Shown here: positions 765 to 34,533 of the stretch, piece after piece
Position numbering within the stretch: the first letter of the stretch is position 1
Layout: each line of letters begins with the position of its first letter
Source: Octopus sinensis
Lineage: Eukaryota
Direction of reading: 5' to 3'
Assembly (NCBI RefSeq): GCF_006345805.1
Contig: NW_021835878.1
Coordinates: 1-36,960, forward strand
DNA length: 36,960 nt
The notes under the pieces: generated by a model
Told to the model about the DNA's origin: nothing
Databases searched by the model: none
What the model saw: the letters and a program-made list of their open reading frames with translations, nothing else
Program-made: the position numbers and the translations under genes

Positions 765-826
765 TTAAAAAGCCACATCAGATGCCATGATGGTTCTAAG
801 GTGTAGGTACATGAGGGGGTCAAACT
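765..826 (-). CDS. Possible terminal exon L: (E)FDPLMYLHLRTIMASDVAF*
   Basis: Acceptor ctactccttatgcag, phase 1 (fits a donor at 4110). Non-repetitive island among repeats, TAA at 765-767, minus-strand AATAAA near 582-587. Not confirmed. Confidence 0.4.
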
Positions 827-879
827 CTGCATAAGGAGTAGCCAACCACCATATATATATATATATATACTCTCTCTCT

Positions 880-1267
880 TTTTTACTCTTTTACTTGTTT
901 CAGTCATTTGACTGCAGCCATGCTGGAGCACCGCCTTTAATCGAGCAACTCGACCCCGGTACTTATTCTTTGTAAGCCCAGTACTTATTCTATCGGTGTC
1001 TTTTGCCGAACTGCTAAGTAACGGGGACATAAACACATCAGCATCGGTTGTCAAGCAATGCTAGGGGGACAAACACAAACATACACACACACATATATAT
1101 ACATATATACGACGGGCTTCTTTCAGTTTCCGTCTACCAAATCCACTCACAAGGCTTTGGTTGGCCCAAGGCTATAGTAGAAGACACTTGCCCAAGGTGC
1201 CACGCAGTGGGACTGAACCCGGAACCATGTGGTTGGTAAACAAGCTACTTACCACACAGCCACTCCT
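880..1267 (-). mobile_element. tRNA-derived SINE, full length, with internal (TA)/(TG) microsatellite
   Basis: Head TGGCTGTGTGG (A-box-like) and GGTTCAGTCCC (B-box-like); body and tail shared with many copies in the window. Confidence 0.85.
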
Positions 1268-1303
1268 ACGCCTATATATATATATACTTTATTTGAAGCA
1301 GAG

Positions 1304-1435
1304 GAAAATTCAACAAAACCTGTTACTTTGAGTTTCATATTGCCGTTCGGCGGACAGTTTTTGCTGATTCTAGCAAAAACTGTCCGATGAATGGCAACGT
1401 GAAACTCGAGTAATAACAGGTTTTGTTGAATTTTC
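1304..1435. repeat. Imperfect foldback (MITE-like), about 62-bp arms, 6-nt loop; related fragment near 11700-11778
   Basis: gaaaattcaacaaaacctgtta...cggacagtttttgct / agcaaaaactgtccg...taacaggttttgttgaattttc. Confidence 0.75.
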
Positions 1436-1522
1436 TGGTGCTTTAAATAAAGCATATTACTCTACCACTGGTATTTGAGTACTCTTTTTTCACCTTGTTT
1501 CACATTTATGTGTTTACTCCGG

Positions 1523-1554
<32 letters not shown>

Positions 1555-29859: not shown

Positions 29860-30735
29860 CATCATCATCATCATCACCATGAGCAATTCCATCATCATCA
29901 TCATCATCATCATGAACATTAACAGTATCATCATCATCATCATCATCAACATTGCAAGCACCAGTACTAGCACCATTACTGCTACTGCTACCACCACCAC
30001 TGTTATCACTACCATCCATGTCACCACTACTGCCATCACCACCACCAACAACAAAAGCAACAACAATGCTACTACGACCCATACTACTACAAGTACCACC
30101 ACTACTACTACAACTACAATAACCACCATTATCACTTCCACCCATGTCACCATCACCACCACAACCATCACCACCACCACCACCACCACCATCACCATCA
30201 CCACCACCACCATCACCCCTCATACTACAGCCACTACCATTAACACCACCACAACTGACATCACTACTACCACCACCACCACCACCATCACCATCATCAC
30301 CATCACCACCACCACCACCACCATCACCATCATCACCATCACCACCACCACTACCACCACCACCACCATCACCCCTCATACTACAGCCACTACCATTAAC
30401 ACCACCACCACTGCCATCACTACTACCACCACCACCACCACCATCACCATCATCACCATCACCACCACCACCACCACCATCACCACCACCACCACCACCA
30501 CCATCACCATCACCACCATCACCATCACCCCTCATACTACAGCCACTACCATTAACACCACCACCACTGCCATCACTACTACCACCACCACCACCACCAT
30601 CACCAACATCACCATCACCACCACCACCACCACCATCACCACCACCCCTCCTACTACAGCCACTACCATTAACACCACCACCACTGCCATCACTACTACC
30701 ACCACCACCACCACCATCACCAACATCACCATCAC
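29860..30735. repeat. (CAC/CAT)n microsatellite with repeated higher-order cassettes
   Basis: The cassette cctc.tactacagccactaccattaacaccacc recurs four times. Confidence 0.93.
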
Positions 30736-30892
30736 AATCTCTCATGCACTTAGCACCACAACAACCACACACATAGAGACAAGACAGTGCCTAAACACAC
30801 ACACACATTCACACAAAATTGTTCATGTAGGACAAAACATGTATGATACTACGCTTAGGTTAGAATACCCCCCACACACACACACACATTCT

Positions 30893-33827
30893 ATTTCATT
30901 TGCCATTACGTTCTGAGTTCAAATCCCGCTGAGGTCGACTTTGCCTTTCATCCTTTTGGGGTCGATAAATTAAGTACCAGTTATGCACTGGGGTCGATGT
31001 AATCGACTTAATCCGTTGTCTGTCCTTGTTTGTCCCCTCTGTGTTTAGCCCCTTGTAGGTAGTAAAGAAATGGGTATTTCGTCTGTCTTTACGTTCTGAG
31101 TTCAAATTCCGCCGAGGTCGACTTTGCCTTTCATCCTTTCGGGGTCGATTAATTAAGTACCAGTTACGCACTGGGGTCGATATAATCGACTTAATCCGTT
31201 TGTCTGTCCTTGTTTGTCCCCTCTGTGTTTAGACCCTTGTAGGTAGTAAAGAAATGGGTATTTCATCTGTCTTTACGTTCTGAGTTCAAATTCCGCCGAG
31301 GTCGACTTTGCCTTTCATCCTTTCGGGGTCGATTAAATAAGTACCAGTTACACACTGGGGTCGATATAATCGACTTAATCCGTTTGTCTGTCCTTGTTTG
31401 TCCCCTCTGTGTTTAGCCCCTTGTAGGTAGTAAAGAAATGGGTATTTCGTCTGTCTTTACGTTCTGAGTTCAAATTCCGCCGAGGTCGACTTTGCCTTTC
31501 ATCCTTTCGGGGTCGATTAAATAAGTACCAGTTACGCACTGGGGTCGATATAATCGACTTAATCCGTTTATCTGTCCTTGTTTGTCCCCTCTGTGTTTAG
31601 CCCCTTGTAGGTAGTAAAGAAATGGGTATTTCGTCTGTCTTTACGTTCTGAGTTCAAATTCTGCCGAGGTCGACTTTGCCTTTCATCTTTTCGGGGTCGA
31701 TTAAATAAGTACCAGTTACGCACTGGGGTCGATATAATCGACTTAATCCGTTTGTCTGTCCTTGTTTGTCCCCTCTGTGTTTAGCCCCTTGTAGGTAGTA
31801 AAGAATGGGGTATTTCGTCTGTCTTACGTTCTGAGTTCAAATCCGCCGAGGTCGACTTTGCCTTTCATCCTTTCGGGGTCGATTAAATAAGTACCAGTTT
31901 CGCACTTTGGGGTCGATTTAATCGACTTAATCCGTTTGTCTGTCCTTTTTGTCCCCTCCGTGTTTAGCCCTTGTAGGTAGTAAAGAAATGGGTATTTCGT
32001 CTGTCTTTACGTTCTGAGTTCAAATTCCGCCGAGGTCGACTTTGCCTTTCATCCTTTCGGGGTCGATTAAATAAGTACCAGTTTCGCACTGGGGTCGATT
32101 TAATCGACTTAATCCGTTTGTCTGTCCTTGTTTGTCCCCTCCGTGTTTAGCCCCTGTAGGTGGTAGTAAAGAAATGGGTATTTCGTCTGTCTTTAGTTCT
32201 GAGTTCAAATTCTGCCGAGGTCGACTTTGCCTTTCATCCTTTCGGGGTCGATTAAATAAGTACCAGTTACGCACTGGGGTCGATATAATCGACTTAATCC
32301 GTTTGTTTGTCCTTGTTTGTCCCCTCTGTGTTAGCCCCTTGTAGGTAGTAAAGAAATGGGTATTTCGGTCCGTCTGTCTTTACGTTCTGAGTTCAAATTC
32401 TGCCGAGGTCGACTTTGCCTTTCATCCTTTCGGGGTCGATTAAATAAGTACCAGTTACGCACTGGGGTCGATATAATCGACTTAATCCGTTTGTCTGTCC
32501 TTGTTTGTCCCCTCTGTGTTTAGCCCCTTGTAGGTAGTAAAGAAATGGGTATTTCGTCTGTCTTTACGTTCTGAGTTCAAATTCTGCCGAGGTCGACTTT
32601 GCCTTTCATCCTTTCGGGGTCGATTAAATAAGTACCAGTTACGCACTGGGGTCGATATAATCGACTTAATCCGTTTGTCTGTCCTTGTTTGTCCCCTCTG
32701 TGTTTAGCCCCTTGTAGGTAGTAAAGAAATGGGTATTTCGTCTGTCTTTACGTTCTGAGTTCAAATTCCGCCGAGGTCGACTTTGCCTTTCATCCTTTCG
32801 GGGTCGATTAAATAAGTACCAGTTTCGCACTGGGGTCGATTTAATCGACTTAATCCGTTTGTCTGTCCTTGTTTGTCCCCTCCGTGTTTAGCCCCTTGTA
32901 GGTAGTAAAGAAATGGGTATTTCGTCTGTCTTTACGTTCTGAGTTCAAATTCCGCCGAGGTCGACTTTGCCTTTCATCCTTTCGGGGTCGATTAAATAAG
33001 TACCAGTTTCGCACTGGGGTCGATTTAATCGACTTAATCCGTTTGTCTGTCTTGTTTGTCCCCTCCGTGTTTAGCCCCTTGTAGGTAGTAAAGAAATGGG
33101 TATTTCGTCTGTCTTTACGTTCTGATTCAAATTCCGCCGAGTCGACTTTGCCTTTCATCCTTTTGGGGTCGATTAAATAAGTACCAGTTTCGCACTGGGG
33201 TCGATTTAATCGACTTAATCCGTGTCTGTCCTTGTGTTGTCCCCTCCGTGTTTAGCCCTTGTAGGTAGTAAAGAAATGGGTATTTGTCTGTCTTTACGTT
33301 CTGAGTTCAAATTCGCCGAGGTCGACTTTGCTTTCATCCTTTCGGGGTCGATTAAATAAGTACAGTTTCGCACTGGGGTCGATTTAATCGACTTAATCCG
33401 TTTGTCTGTCCTTGTTTGTCCCCTCCGTGTTTAGCCCCTTGTAGGTAGTAAAGAAATGGGTATTTCGTCTGTCTTTACGTTCTGAGTTCAAATTCCGCCG
33501 AGGTCGACTTTGCCTTTCATCCTTTCGGGGTCAATTAAATAAGTACCAGTTACGCACTGGGGTCGATATAATCGACTTAATCCGTTTGTCTGTCCTTGTT
33601 TGTCCCCTCCGTGTTTAGCCCCTTGTAGGTAGTAAAGAAATGGGTATTTCGTCTGTCTTTACGTTCTGAGTTCAAATTCCGCCGAGGTCGACTTTGCCTT
33701 TCATCCTTTCGGGGTCAATTAAATAAGTACCAGTTACGCACTGGGGTCGATATAATCGACTTAATCCGTTTGTCTGTCCTTGTTTGTCCCCTCTGTGTTT
33801 AGCCCCTTGTGGGTAGTAAAGAAATGG
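30893..33827 (+). repeat. Tandem array of 16 units of about 184 bp derived from a second tRNA-SINE family
   Basis: acgttctgagttcaaa recurs at 30908, 31091, 31275, 31459, 31643, 31826, 32009, 32195, 32382, 32566, 32750, 32934, 33117, 33296, 33477 and 33661. Units are near-identical. Confidence 0.95.
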
Positions 33828-34140
33828 GTGTGTGTGTGAGCCTTTGTGTGTGTATGTGTGTGTTGTGTGTGTGTGTATATGTATATGTTTGTGTATGGGA
33901 GCCTTCATGTGTGTGTGTGTGTGTGTATGTGAGCTTTTGTGTGTGTGTATGTGAGCTTTTGTGTGTGTGTATGTGAGCTTTTGTGTGTGTGTGTGTATGT
34001 GAGCTTTTGTGTGTGTGTATGTGAGCTTTGTGTGTGTGTGTGTATGTGAGCTTTTGTGTGTGTGTATGTGAGCTTTTGTGTGTGTGTATGTATGTGAACT
34101 TTTGTGTGTGTGTGTATGTGAGCCTTTGTGTATGTGCGTA
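33828..34140. repeat. (TG)n-based minisatellite with atgtgagctttt spacers
   Basis: Direct inspection. Confidence 0.9.
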
Positions 34141-34370
34141 AGTCATTGTGTTTGTGTTTGTCCTCCACCATTGCCTAGTAACCAGTGTGGGTTTGTTTAT
34201 GTCCCTTCAACTTAGCAGTTCAGCAAGAAGAAACAGACAGAACAAATGACAAACTTAAAAGGAAAAAAAAAAAGGAAAAAATGTATTAGGGGTTGATTCA
34301 TTCAACTAAAACCCTTCCAGGCTGTGCTCCAGCATGGCAATTGTCTAACGAATGACACAAGTAAACAAAA
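34140..34370 (+). mobile_element. Diverged SINE 3' body
   Basis: Degenerate match to the family body and tail. Confidence 0.6.
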
Positions 34371-34434
34371 AGAAAGAAAAAACCTCTATCAGGTCCTCCA
34401 TCACCAAAATGCCTCAAGCAGGGTTTGAACTTAC

Positions 34435-34533
34435 GATGCTGGACGACCGTGCCTTGGCCACTAAATCTGCCACTGGAAAACAGTTGGAACATACTTTCTC
34501 TTGCTTCTCAAGACCCAGCTGGGGCAAAAAGAT
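34435..34533 (-). CDS. Exon A: [33 protein letters not shown] (C-terminal end of FYVE-like finger)
   Basis: Acceptor tttttttctatttacag, donor gtaagt, 99 nt, phase 0/0. LPQLGLEK..KVCxxCF resembles the last Zn-binding CxxC segment of FYVE domains. Confidence 0.88.

Follow-up and report, generated by a model that had tools for sequence, protein, structure and literature searches.

A 13-exon gene of Octopus sinensis encoding a FYVE-ARM protein, a probable PI3P-anchored armadillo adaptor

The yeast protein Vac8 is an acyl-anchored armadillo (ARM) adaptor of the vacuole for Nvj1, Atg13 and Vac17, with twelve ARM repeats, no further domain and, as its defining feature, an N-terminal SH4-type acylation motif made up of Gly2 and a nearby Cys. 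Well-described effectors of phosphatidylinositol 3-phosphate (PI3P) with a single FYVE finger, such as EEA1, Hrs/Vps27, RUFY1, ZFYVE16 (endofin) and LST2/ZFYVE28, instead carry coiled coils, VHS/UIM or RUN domains. The two parts occur together, FYVE and then ARM, in GlFYVE of Giardia lamblia (GL50803_16653), the only experimentally studied protein of this order that we found in the literature searched. GlFYVE is located on endocytic peripheral vacuoles, associates reciprocally with clathrin heavy chain and a dynamin-related protein, lowers fluid-phase uptake when it or its truncations are expressed, and is mislocalised without its ARM part (PMC7058353). Here we analyse a stretch of 36,960 nucleotides from Octopus sinensis (contig NW_021835878.1 of assembly GCF_006345805.1, positions 1 to 36,960; "the window" denotes this whole stretch), which covers 11 of the 13 coding exons that make up a FYVE-ARM gene.

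Our results are probably best accounted for by a 13-exon gene whose product of about 473 residues serves on endosomes as an ARM adaptor anchored to PI3P. Taken by themselves, the gene model and the FYVE-ARM architecture we regard as close to certain. The closest natural counterpart of the ARM domain, by profile and by fold, is Vac8 (PDB 5xjg, 6kbm and 7ycj), and both proteins would place an ARM solenoid on a membrane of the endolysosomal type through a lipid-based anchor, if our reading of the FYVE-ARM protein is correct.

The gene model in two octopus species

A preliminary description of the window, made from its letters, had proposed a hidden gene of 11-12 exons at 765-34533 that splices in phase to encode a FYVE-like finger followed by ARM-like repeats. 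All of the peptides that it quoted are found in minus-strand frames, and the gene lies on this strand, where 11 colinear exons of 66-188 nt each run from 34533 to 4091 (Table 1). An AG acceptor, mostly preceded by a pyrimidine tract, is present in 11 of the 11 exons and GT at all ten internal donors, which read GTAAGT, GTGAGT or similar on the minus strand. The proposed splicing in phase was borne out as well, since the joined coding sequence is open over 1179 nt (392 amino acids and a TAA stop) with compatible phases throughout, including the junctions ...AIS-H-ILEK..., where the His is split over the splice between exons 4 and 5, and ...EHLL-R-EGAGAYLIG between exons 10 and 11. The window exons span 30 kb and are separated by repeat-rich introns of 1.7-5.7 kb. 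All plus-strand open reading frames (ORFs) of the window are repeat-derived.

Exon borders were set with homologous proteins as tblastn guides. The window exons match proteins of a squid- or cuttlefish-like cephalopod, of abalone and of a soft coral with E values down to 1e-35 per exon, and exon 1 is 97% identical to the Octopus vulgaris orthologue (P0001), 55% to the cephalopod orthologue P0003 and 48% to the coral protein P0004. In P0002, a protein fragment from an octopod, exons 5 to 11 are joined identically to our model, and uninterrupted full-length orthologues from other species are present on mRNA-sized contigs of about 1.7-2 kb in sequencing-run assemblies (P0003, P0186 and P0176).

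The extent and the exon count of the preliminary description were right in part. Position 34533 is indeed where the window exons start, but the coding sequence stops at 4091: exon 11 is not spliced after ...YLIG, as had been assumed, and continues with ...YLIGISCFEKFF...DISAF to the stop codon, as it does in the orthologues. The remaining sequence, 765-4090, is noncoding and a 3' untranslated region at most, with the first AATAAA about 310 nt past the stop, at about 3780. The window does hold 11 exons, among them exons 7 and 8, which had been elided, but the gene has 13 coding exons in total, two of which lie upstream of the window, so that the predicted full protein has about 81 + 392 = 473 residues.

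These two exons are known from O. vulgaris, whose chromosome record OX597842.1 (GCA_951406725.2) is syntenic with the window and carries a start exon (MADDS...RKAK) and a FYVE-core exon (WIPDEEADCCFICRERFNQVRRRHHCRQCGKIVCKTCSKNK) upstream of the part that the window represents; by synteny, the right edge of the window aligns about 960 bp short of this core exon. The coding sequences of the two species are 98.9% identical, compared with 93-97% for unique intronic DNA, and they differ by 10 synonymous and 2 non-synonymous codon changes. The AG and GT sites are kept in O. vulgaris in all 11 window exons; exon 2, for example, shows one synonymous change. The identity of the coding sequence and the 10:2 ratio therefore demonstrate that the gene is under purifying selection, and the window must derive from an Octopus that is a very near relative of O. 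vulgaris.

The gene turned out not to be hidden, as the O. vulgaris model CAI9744129.1 ('...8-like isoform X2', 360 amino acids) and many other gene models are already public. This O. vulgaris model omits exons 2, 3, 7 and 9, all four of which are intact, flanked by AG and GT, of phase 0-0 and conserved in both octopus genomes; exon 9 corresponds precisely to one ARM repeat and contains the most conserved ARM motif of the family (RGIANFS). Shorter predicted isoforms are also found in Styela, Nematostella, Tachypleus and Ylistrum, and the omission could reflect true splicing of ARM modules as cassettes or an artefact of annotation. Separately, codon 299 of the window coding sequence (8836-8838), in exon 9, encodes the near-invariant Ala of RGIANFS, which the window shares with at least 90% of the family, and O. 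vulgaris reads RGIGNFS at this position, one of only two amino acid differences between the octopuses.

FYVE finger, armadillo domain and family

The FYVE-like finger of the preliminary description is a canonical one in the O. vulgaris orthologue, which reads WIPD...RRRHHCRQCG...KVCSNCF and scores 70.7 bits with Pfam FYVE (PF01363, cut-off 27.8 bits); P0003 reaches 66.2 and the coral protein P0004 71.6 bits. The WxxD and R(R/K)HHCR elements that had been expected upstream are thus intact in this orthologue, but they are not within the window, where tblastn finds no FYVE-core exon. Of the finger, the window encodes no more than the final ~20 residues, including the last CxxC (CSNC) in exon 1, and its own 392-residue product has no Pfam FYVE match. 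Two alignments, of 15 and of 16 members and reaching from Physarum to molluscs, show the W and D of WxxD, the Arg and HHCR, the eight Cys and a Gly as invariant, and against PDB sequences the finger matches Vps27, EEA1, Hrs, RUFY1 and ZFYVE16 at 1e-16 to 1e-22, proteins with which it shares its signature motifs. The window reads E-K-V-C-S-N-C where at least 90% of family members have RVC, a conservative change of R to K and the single deviation of the octopus finger from the signature.

The ARM repeats, too, are supported. With Pfam Arm (PF00514, cut-off 20.6), the spliced protein of the window scores 27.1 bits (residues 54-79) and the coral protein P0004 56.7 bits. When P0003 was modelled with AlphaFold, five sequences gave a predicted local distance difference test score (pLDDT) of 70, and 35 family members gave a pLDDT of 92 with a predicted template modelling score (pTM) of 0.86. 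The model comprises, in this order, two short N-terminal strands, the FYVE finger, a helix resembling a capping H3 and eight ARM repeats; a conserved N-terminal segment of about 40 residues precedes the finger, and the N-terminal segment, FYVE and ARM together account for all 470 residues. Because pTM is high, the model suggests that finger and solenoid may be packed as one rigid unit.

In a Foldseek comparison with the PDB, designed ARM proteins rank first, and designed ARM proteins, Vac8, importin-alpha and beta-catenin are all matched with probability 1.00. Among natural chains, Vac8 has a TM score of 0.60 (root mean square deviation 4.6-4.7 Å over ~370 columns, 18-19% identity), importin-alpha 0.59 and beta-catenin 0.56. 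All alignments cover 290-460 columns, the length of an ARM domain at most, and therefore no PDB chain seems to span FYVE and ARM together; likewise, no solved chain matched both halves of the family profile. With this profile, designed consensus ARM proteins outscore Vac8 (3e-26, one continuous stretch of ~330 residues), which is followed by ODAD2/ARMC4 (9e-18), importin-alpha (2e-16) and plakoglobin (2e-13).

The C-terminal four repeats are the best-conserved part within the family and are specific to it in comparison with Vac8; taken alone, this half of the octopus protein (exons 7-11) has no significant PDB match. The conserved motifs of repeats 5 and 6 are RHRIIQEDFxxG, CxxANLA and RxxANFxxFxxN, and their Asn residues sit in ANLA/ANF motifs that resemble the helix-3 consensus of ARM repeats. 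In importin-alpha and beta-catenin, the helix-3 Asn of such motifs grips the backbone of an extended ligand peptide. Judged by these motifs, repeats 5 and 6 are likely to form the partner-binding surface.

How widely the protein is distributed was a question already raised by the preliminary description, and members are found from Physarum and Capsaspora to molluscs and tunicates. A word-indexed search with the draft protein returned 4 relatives, and an exhaustive profile search of 1.84 billion representatives gave 63 matches at ≤1e-30, about 25-30 of them end to end and typically 460-490 amino acids long. By name or source, members of the family come from about 25 species of molluscs (gastropods, bivalves and cephalopods), echinoderms (Amphiura, Antedon, Anneissia and Apostichopus), cnidarians (Nematostella, Porites, Actinostola, Dendronephthya and Paramuricea), placozoans (Trichoplax), tunicates (Ciona and Styela), chelicerates (Trichonephila, Nephila and Tachypleus), bryozoans (Watersipora), unicellular and fungal relatives (Capsaspora, with 989 amino acids, Fonticula and the glomeromycete Diversispora) and Amoebozoa (Physarum). 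Members such as Haliotis rufescens XP_048256705.1, Nematostella LOC5521723, Ciona intestinalis LOC100186391, Styela clava LOC120348043, Trichoplax RDD42612.1 and Fonticula XP_009497270.1 can be aligned over their full length, agree in their FYVE signature residues and have ARM motifs in common.

No vertebrate, insect or nematode protein was among the matches listed in any search, and a profile search weighted toward deuterostomes added Ciona and no vertebrate among the at least 13 matches listed. That these groups lack the family is well supported, if not proven, with the chicken gene LOC421690 left out of this statement; this gene carries the automatic name 'vacuolar protein 8-like' (PMC5148799).

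The preliminary description recognised no such architecture among named human FYVE proteins, and the gene is not a plain orthologue of a well-characterised one: members are called 'uncharacterized' or 'hypothetical' or bear automatic labels that contradict one another (Vac8-like, ZFYVE21, ZFYVE26-like, PIKfyve, which is the PI3P 5-kinase, and, for one sea-cucumber member, ARIA). Identity with ZFYVE21, ZFYVE26 or PIKfyve was considered and rejected: the PDB chain of ZFYVE26 (2539 amino acids) matches profile positions 35-99 only, that is, the FYVE finger, Pfam detects no kinase, chaperonin-like or further domain, and members have about 470 residues. Full-text literature searches, which did not cover most subscription journals, returned no paper on the animal family.

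Two further observations concern the family. Tegillarca granosa has two members, P0014 and P0205 (KUTeg_003563 and KUTeg_003561), on one contig, and the spacing of their locus tags, two apart, points to a local tandem duplication. A long form has an N-terminal extension of 250-350 residues before the FYVE-ARM unit (P0036 of Capsaspora, 989 amino acids; P0071, P0079 and P0097, 880-930 amino acids); it is near GlFYVE in size and layout and could be a link between the animal family and the Giardia protein.

Proposed mechanism and alternatives

The fully conserved FYVE signature and the roles of FYVE and ARM domains elsewhere lead us to propose a mechanism that we consider fairly likely. The FYVE finger would bind PI3P and thereby recruit the protein to endosomal, phagosomal or autophagic membranes. 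There the ARM solenoid would act as an adaptor for at least one partner protein, which probably docks through an extended peptide on the surface formed by helix 3 in repeats 5 and 6, where conservation of the scaffold is highest. The net result would be a lipid-headgroup-anchored counterpart of the acyl-anchored Vac8.

Several points weigh against this proposal. Throughout the family, the lipid ligand, the membrane to which the protein goes, the place where partners bind and the function as an adaptor are inferred; the conserved residues are placed in a groove by sequence register only, and the structural model is that of P0003, which is 52% identical to the octopus protein. The FYVE core was read in the O. 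vulgaris orthologue, about 1 kb beyond the edge of the window, and not in the species of the window, and the KVC that replaces RVC could alter lipid affinity. Moreover, a single FYVE finger usually has to dimerise or make a second contact to bind membranes stably, and the FYVE-ARM protein shows no evident coiled coil or other dimerisation element.

Among the alternatives, the one that fares best, although we think it unlikely, is that the protein works in endocytosis specifically, as a scaffold associated with clathrin or dynamin in the way of GlFYVE, and not as an endosomal adaptor in general. The domain order of GlFYVE, its binding to clathrin heavy chain and a dynamin-related protein and its effect on fluid-phase uptake (PMC7058353) speak for such a function, as do the FYVE-ARM proteins of 880-990 amino acids in Capsaspora and unnamed protists. 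The likeness is one of domain order, however, and was judged from the published description of GlFYVE rather than from its ARM sequence. At 990 amino acids, GlFYVE is twice as long, begins with a disordered N-terminus of 250 amino acids and comes from a distant lineage with a highly derived endocytic system, and no clathrin-box motif was noticed in the family sequences, at which no dedicated search was aimed.

A somewhat less probable reading is that the finger does not read PI3P and has another lipid, a protein or a structural role instead, the ARM domain then being a soluble peptide receptor of the importin-alpha or beta-catenin kind. Both of these proteins are nearly equal to Vac8 as structural matches, the octopus finger has K for R in its RVC motif, and a FYVE-ARM unit folded as one body could occlude or re-orient the lipid pocket. 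Against this stands the invariance of the PI3P signature (WxxD, R(R/K)HHCR and the Cys ligands) over more than 1 billion years of divergence, which is hard to explain without the canonical ligand, and the change to K is conservative.

The analogy with Vac8 drawn in the preliminary description has some support in the ARM part, for which Vac8 is the best natural PDB match, but does not extend to the type of anchor, the number of repeats or the level of identity. Taken further, it would make the gene a true orthologue of fungal Vac8 with a role at contact sites of the vacuole or lysosome, in inheritance and in autophagy, in line with the NCBI name 'vacuolar protein 8-like' of the Haliotis gene and the truncated O. 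vulgaris name, which probably represents the same label. We consider this very unlikely. The FYVE-ARM protein has a FYVE finger, a capping helix and eight repeats, whereas Vac8 has more repeats and is anchored by myristate and palmitate, and its PDB chains show no finger in the aligned region. FYVE-ARM N-termini have neither Gly2 nor an early Cys (MADDSNDGVIKLE... in O. vulgaris, beginning MADDSND, and MDSENGLLTV... in P0003), and the C-terminal four repeats lack a PDB match. Members also exist in Fonticula and in a glomeromycete fungus; these lineages are expected to have a Vac8 of their own, which would make the two proteins paralogues. The lack of an acylation motif, the smaller number of repeats, the FYVE finger and an identity of only 18-19% place the FYVE-ARM protein outside the Vac8 family in the strict sense.

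A role in ubiquitin ligation, as an adaptor that brings substrates to a ligase in the manner of ARMC5 or of plant ARM-BTB and U-box-ARM proteins, is still less probable. ARM_ARMC5 (PF24768) is the top-scoring Pfam model of the ARM region (E = 1e-12 to 1e-14), there is a weak match to plant U-box ARM, and the sea-cucumber label ARIA refers to a plant ARM-BTB protein. Yet the ARM_ARMC5 scores of 48-54 bits are far below the cut-off of 79.9, ARMC5 has no FYVE finger, and Pfam detects no BTB, U-box or other ligase-linking domain in a protein whose length is fully accounted for. Finally, a decaying pseudogene or chance frames in repeat-rich DNA, as the short exons amid very dense repeats and the weak pyrimidine tract of exon 10 might suggest, can be dismissed in view of the intact 1179-nt frame, the canonical splice sites, the excess of synonymous changes and the uninterrupted or identically joined orthologues.

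Window features and meaning of the family

The window is AT-rich (38% GC) and contains many microsatellites, satellites and repeats that resemble short interspersed nuclear elements (SINEs), the main ones of which are listed in Table 1 together with the exons. The 184-bp satellite takes up the greater part of the intron that separates exons 1 and 2. The SINE-like repeat of about 400 bp is present in at least six copies in both orientations, with 80-95% identity, and in many copies at the O. vulgaris locus; ARAGORN detects no tRNA-like head in these repeats. Trinucleotide arrays of 0.6-1.3 kb, namely (CAT)n, (CAC)n, (AAT)n and (TGA)n, lie in the introns, and one of them, a (CAT)n array of 950 bp, reaches to 12 nt upstream of exon 10, because of which the acceptor of this exon is purine-rich with a weak pyrimidine tract (...tggtgatgatgctggttgctag). 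Repeated minus-strand ORF fragments read ...VQFAGHCCRAEKEVISTLLLWKP...RDTGIQQQDLRNA..DREVW... and ...LRWYGHVARMDEDSCVKK...GRGRPRKTW...; we take them to resemble the C-terminal tails of ORF2 of retrotransposons without long terminal repeats, and these retroelement-like intronic ORFs have no Pfam match.

Table 1. Exons and repeats of the window; for the exons that the O. vulgaris X2 model omits, positions at the O. vulgaris locus (L001) are added
Feature	Position	Strand	Sequence	Content
Exon 1 (third coding exon of the gene)	34435..34533	minus	IFLPQ...SSSI	final FYVE beta-strands, (K)VC motif, last CxxC zinc pair, C-terminal helix of the finger; acceptor ...tttacag, donor gtaagt
Exon 2	29768..29833	minus	NFRIVAAKQLAEFSRDTAMVPK (NFRIV...VPK)	H3-like capping helix starting the ARM solenoid; phase 0-0, 66 nt; omitted in X2 (L001 16933-16998)
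Exon 3	27695..27760	minus	VVEVGGVQALVALATVDQAEIQ (VVEVGG...EIQ)	ARM repeat 1, near-invariant GG turn; phase 0-0, 66 nt; omitted in X2 (L001 18506-18571)
Exon 4	24195..24286	minus	EGVMQGLHSLSMHQTLHNTLIQSGAVKAIS + CA (EGVMQ...AIS)	end of ARM repeat 1 and start of repeat 2
Exon 5	22149..22243	minus	(H)ILEKSSKHGNISADGISAIHIFCKTPGLITK(V)	ARM repeat 2; 100% identity to P0001
Exon 6	20033..20220	minus	(V)LQDGALLPVLNLCHSGGAVSLVAMKTLCIIAKDKETHSIIVDSQRVQALPQIFLFLNSTEPQ (GALLPV)	ARM repeats 3 and 4; tblastn E = 7e-35
Exon 7	16480..16554	minus	MQSAAVKILTYISASNNWCRHQLIQ	helix 3 of repeat 4 and start of the strongly conserved RHRIIQED; phase 0-0, 75 nt; omitted in X2 (L001 27231-27305)
Exon 8	14621..14740	minus	KDMACGQNINSLLKGSTWQQEVLTMATALVANLAVCSSDT	ARM repeat 5; family-invariant ANLA, Asn on helix 3
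Exon 9	8806..8937	minus	VCLSNLQKTLCSLLHRDNLDTETLLNILRGIANFSKFKLNTPTL (peptide quoted in the preliminary description: LLNILRGIANFS)	exactly ARM repeat 6; RxxANFxxFxxN; phase 0-0, 132 nt; omitted in X2 (L001 32457-32588)
Exon 10	6050..6180	minus	MQYLPEIIRKGLMSEHTQTKQQTMRAISFLLAYMPEQTTEHLL + AG	ARM repeat 7
Exon 11 (last coding)	4091..4205	minus	(R)EGAGAYLIGISCFEKFFKMMNEFFSKTCPEIGDISAF	ARM repeat 8; stop TAA 4093-4091; C-terminus identical to P0001
SINE-like copies	~875-1284, 5553-5951, 7381-7796, 8128-8546, 11275-11664, 24720-25116	both		
Satellite	30892-33829			184 bp, 16 tandem copies (96% matches)
Trinucleotide arrays	6192-7141, 10017-10931, 23357-23938, 26200-27479			
Intronic array	25460-26023			100 bp x 5.6 (98% matches)
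Intronic array	17423-18148			252 bp x 2.9
Intronic array	19202-19593			63 bp x 6.2
Intronic array	15097-16202			15/30-bp minisatellite, ~1.1 kb
Retroelement-like ORF fragments	4412-5495, 28650-28990	minus		

The FYVE-ARM family is old, conserved and already predicted in public annotation, and each of its two domains is of a textbook type; what is new, a modest but real advance, is the recognition of an uncharacterised family of putative PI3P effectors that the standard model organisms appear to lack. For annotation, this means that the present automatic names are misleading and that the O. vulgaris model misses four conserved exons.

Endosome maturation, phagocytosis and autophagy all depend for their organisation on PI3P effectors. 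Nearly everything in the present catalogue of FYVE proteins stems from yeast, fly, worm and mammals. The FYVE-ARM family, in which a perfect PI3P-binding signature and a conserved ARM surface are kept all the way from slime moulds to tunicates, was apparently overlooked because the usual model organisms lack the gene. We may further speculate that FYVE-ARM was an ancestral organelle adaptor of Amorphea (Amoebozoa and Opisthokonta) with a common origin with Vac8, that fungi swapped the FYVE finger for N-terminal acylation and that vertebrates, insects and nematodes lost the gene; we hold this to be doubtful, but if it were true, a whole PI3P effector pathway would be unexplored, with conserved partners at repeats 5-6. 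Ciona, Nematostella and Capsaspora are organisms in which the family is open to study. The partners of the protein would reveal a PI3P-dependent function that many marine invertebrates have kept and that vertebrates have given up or replaced, and they would provide a test for an older, FYVE-based form of lipid-anchored ARM adaptors like Vac8.

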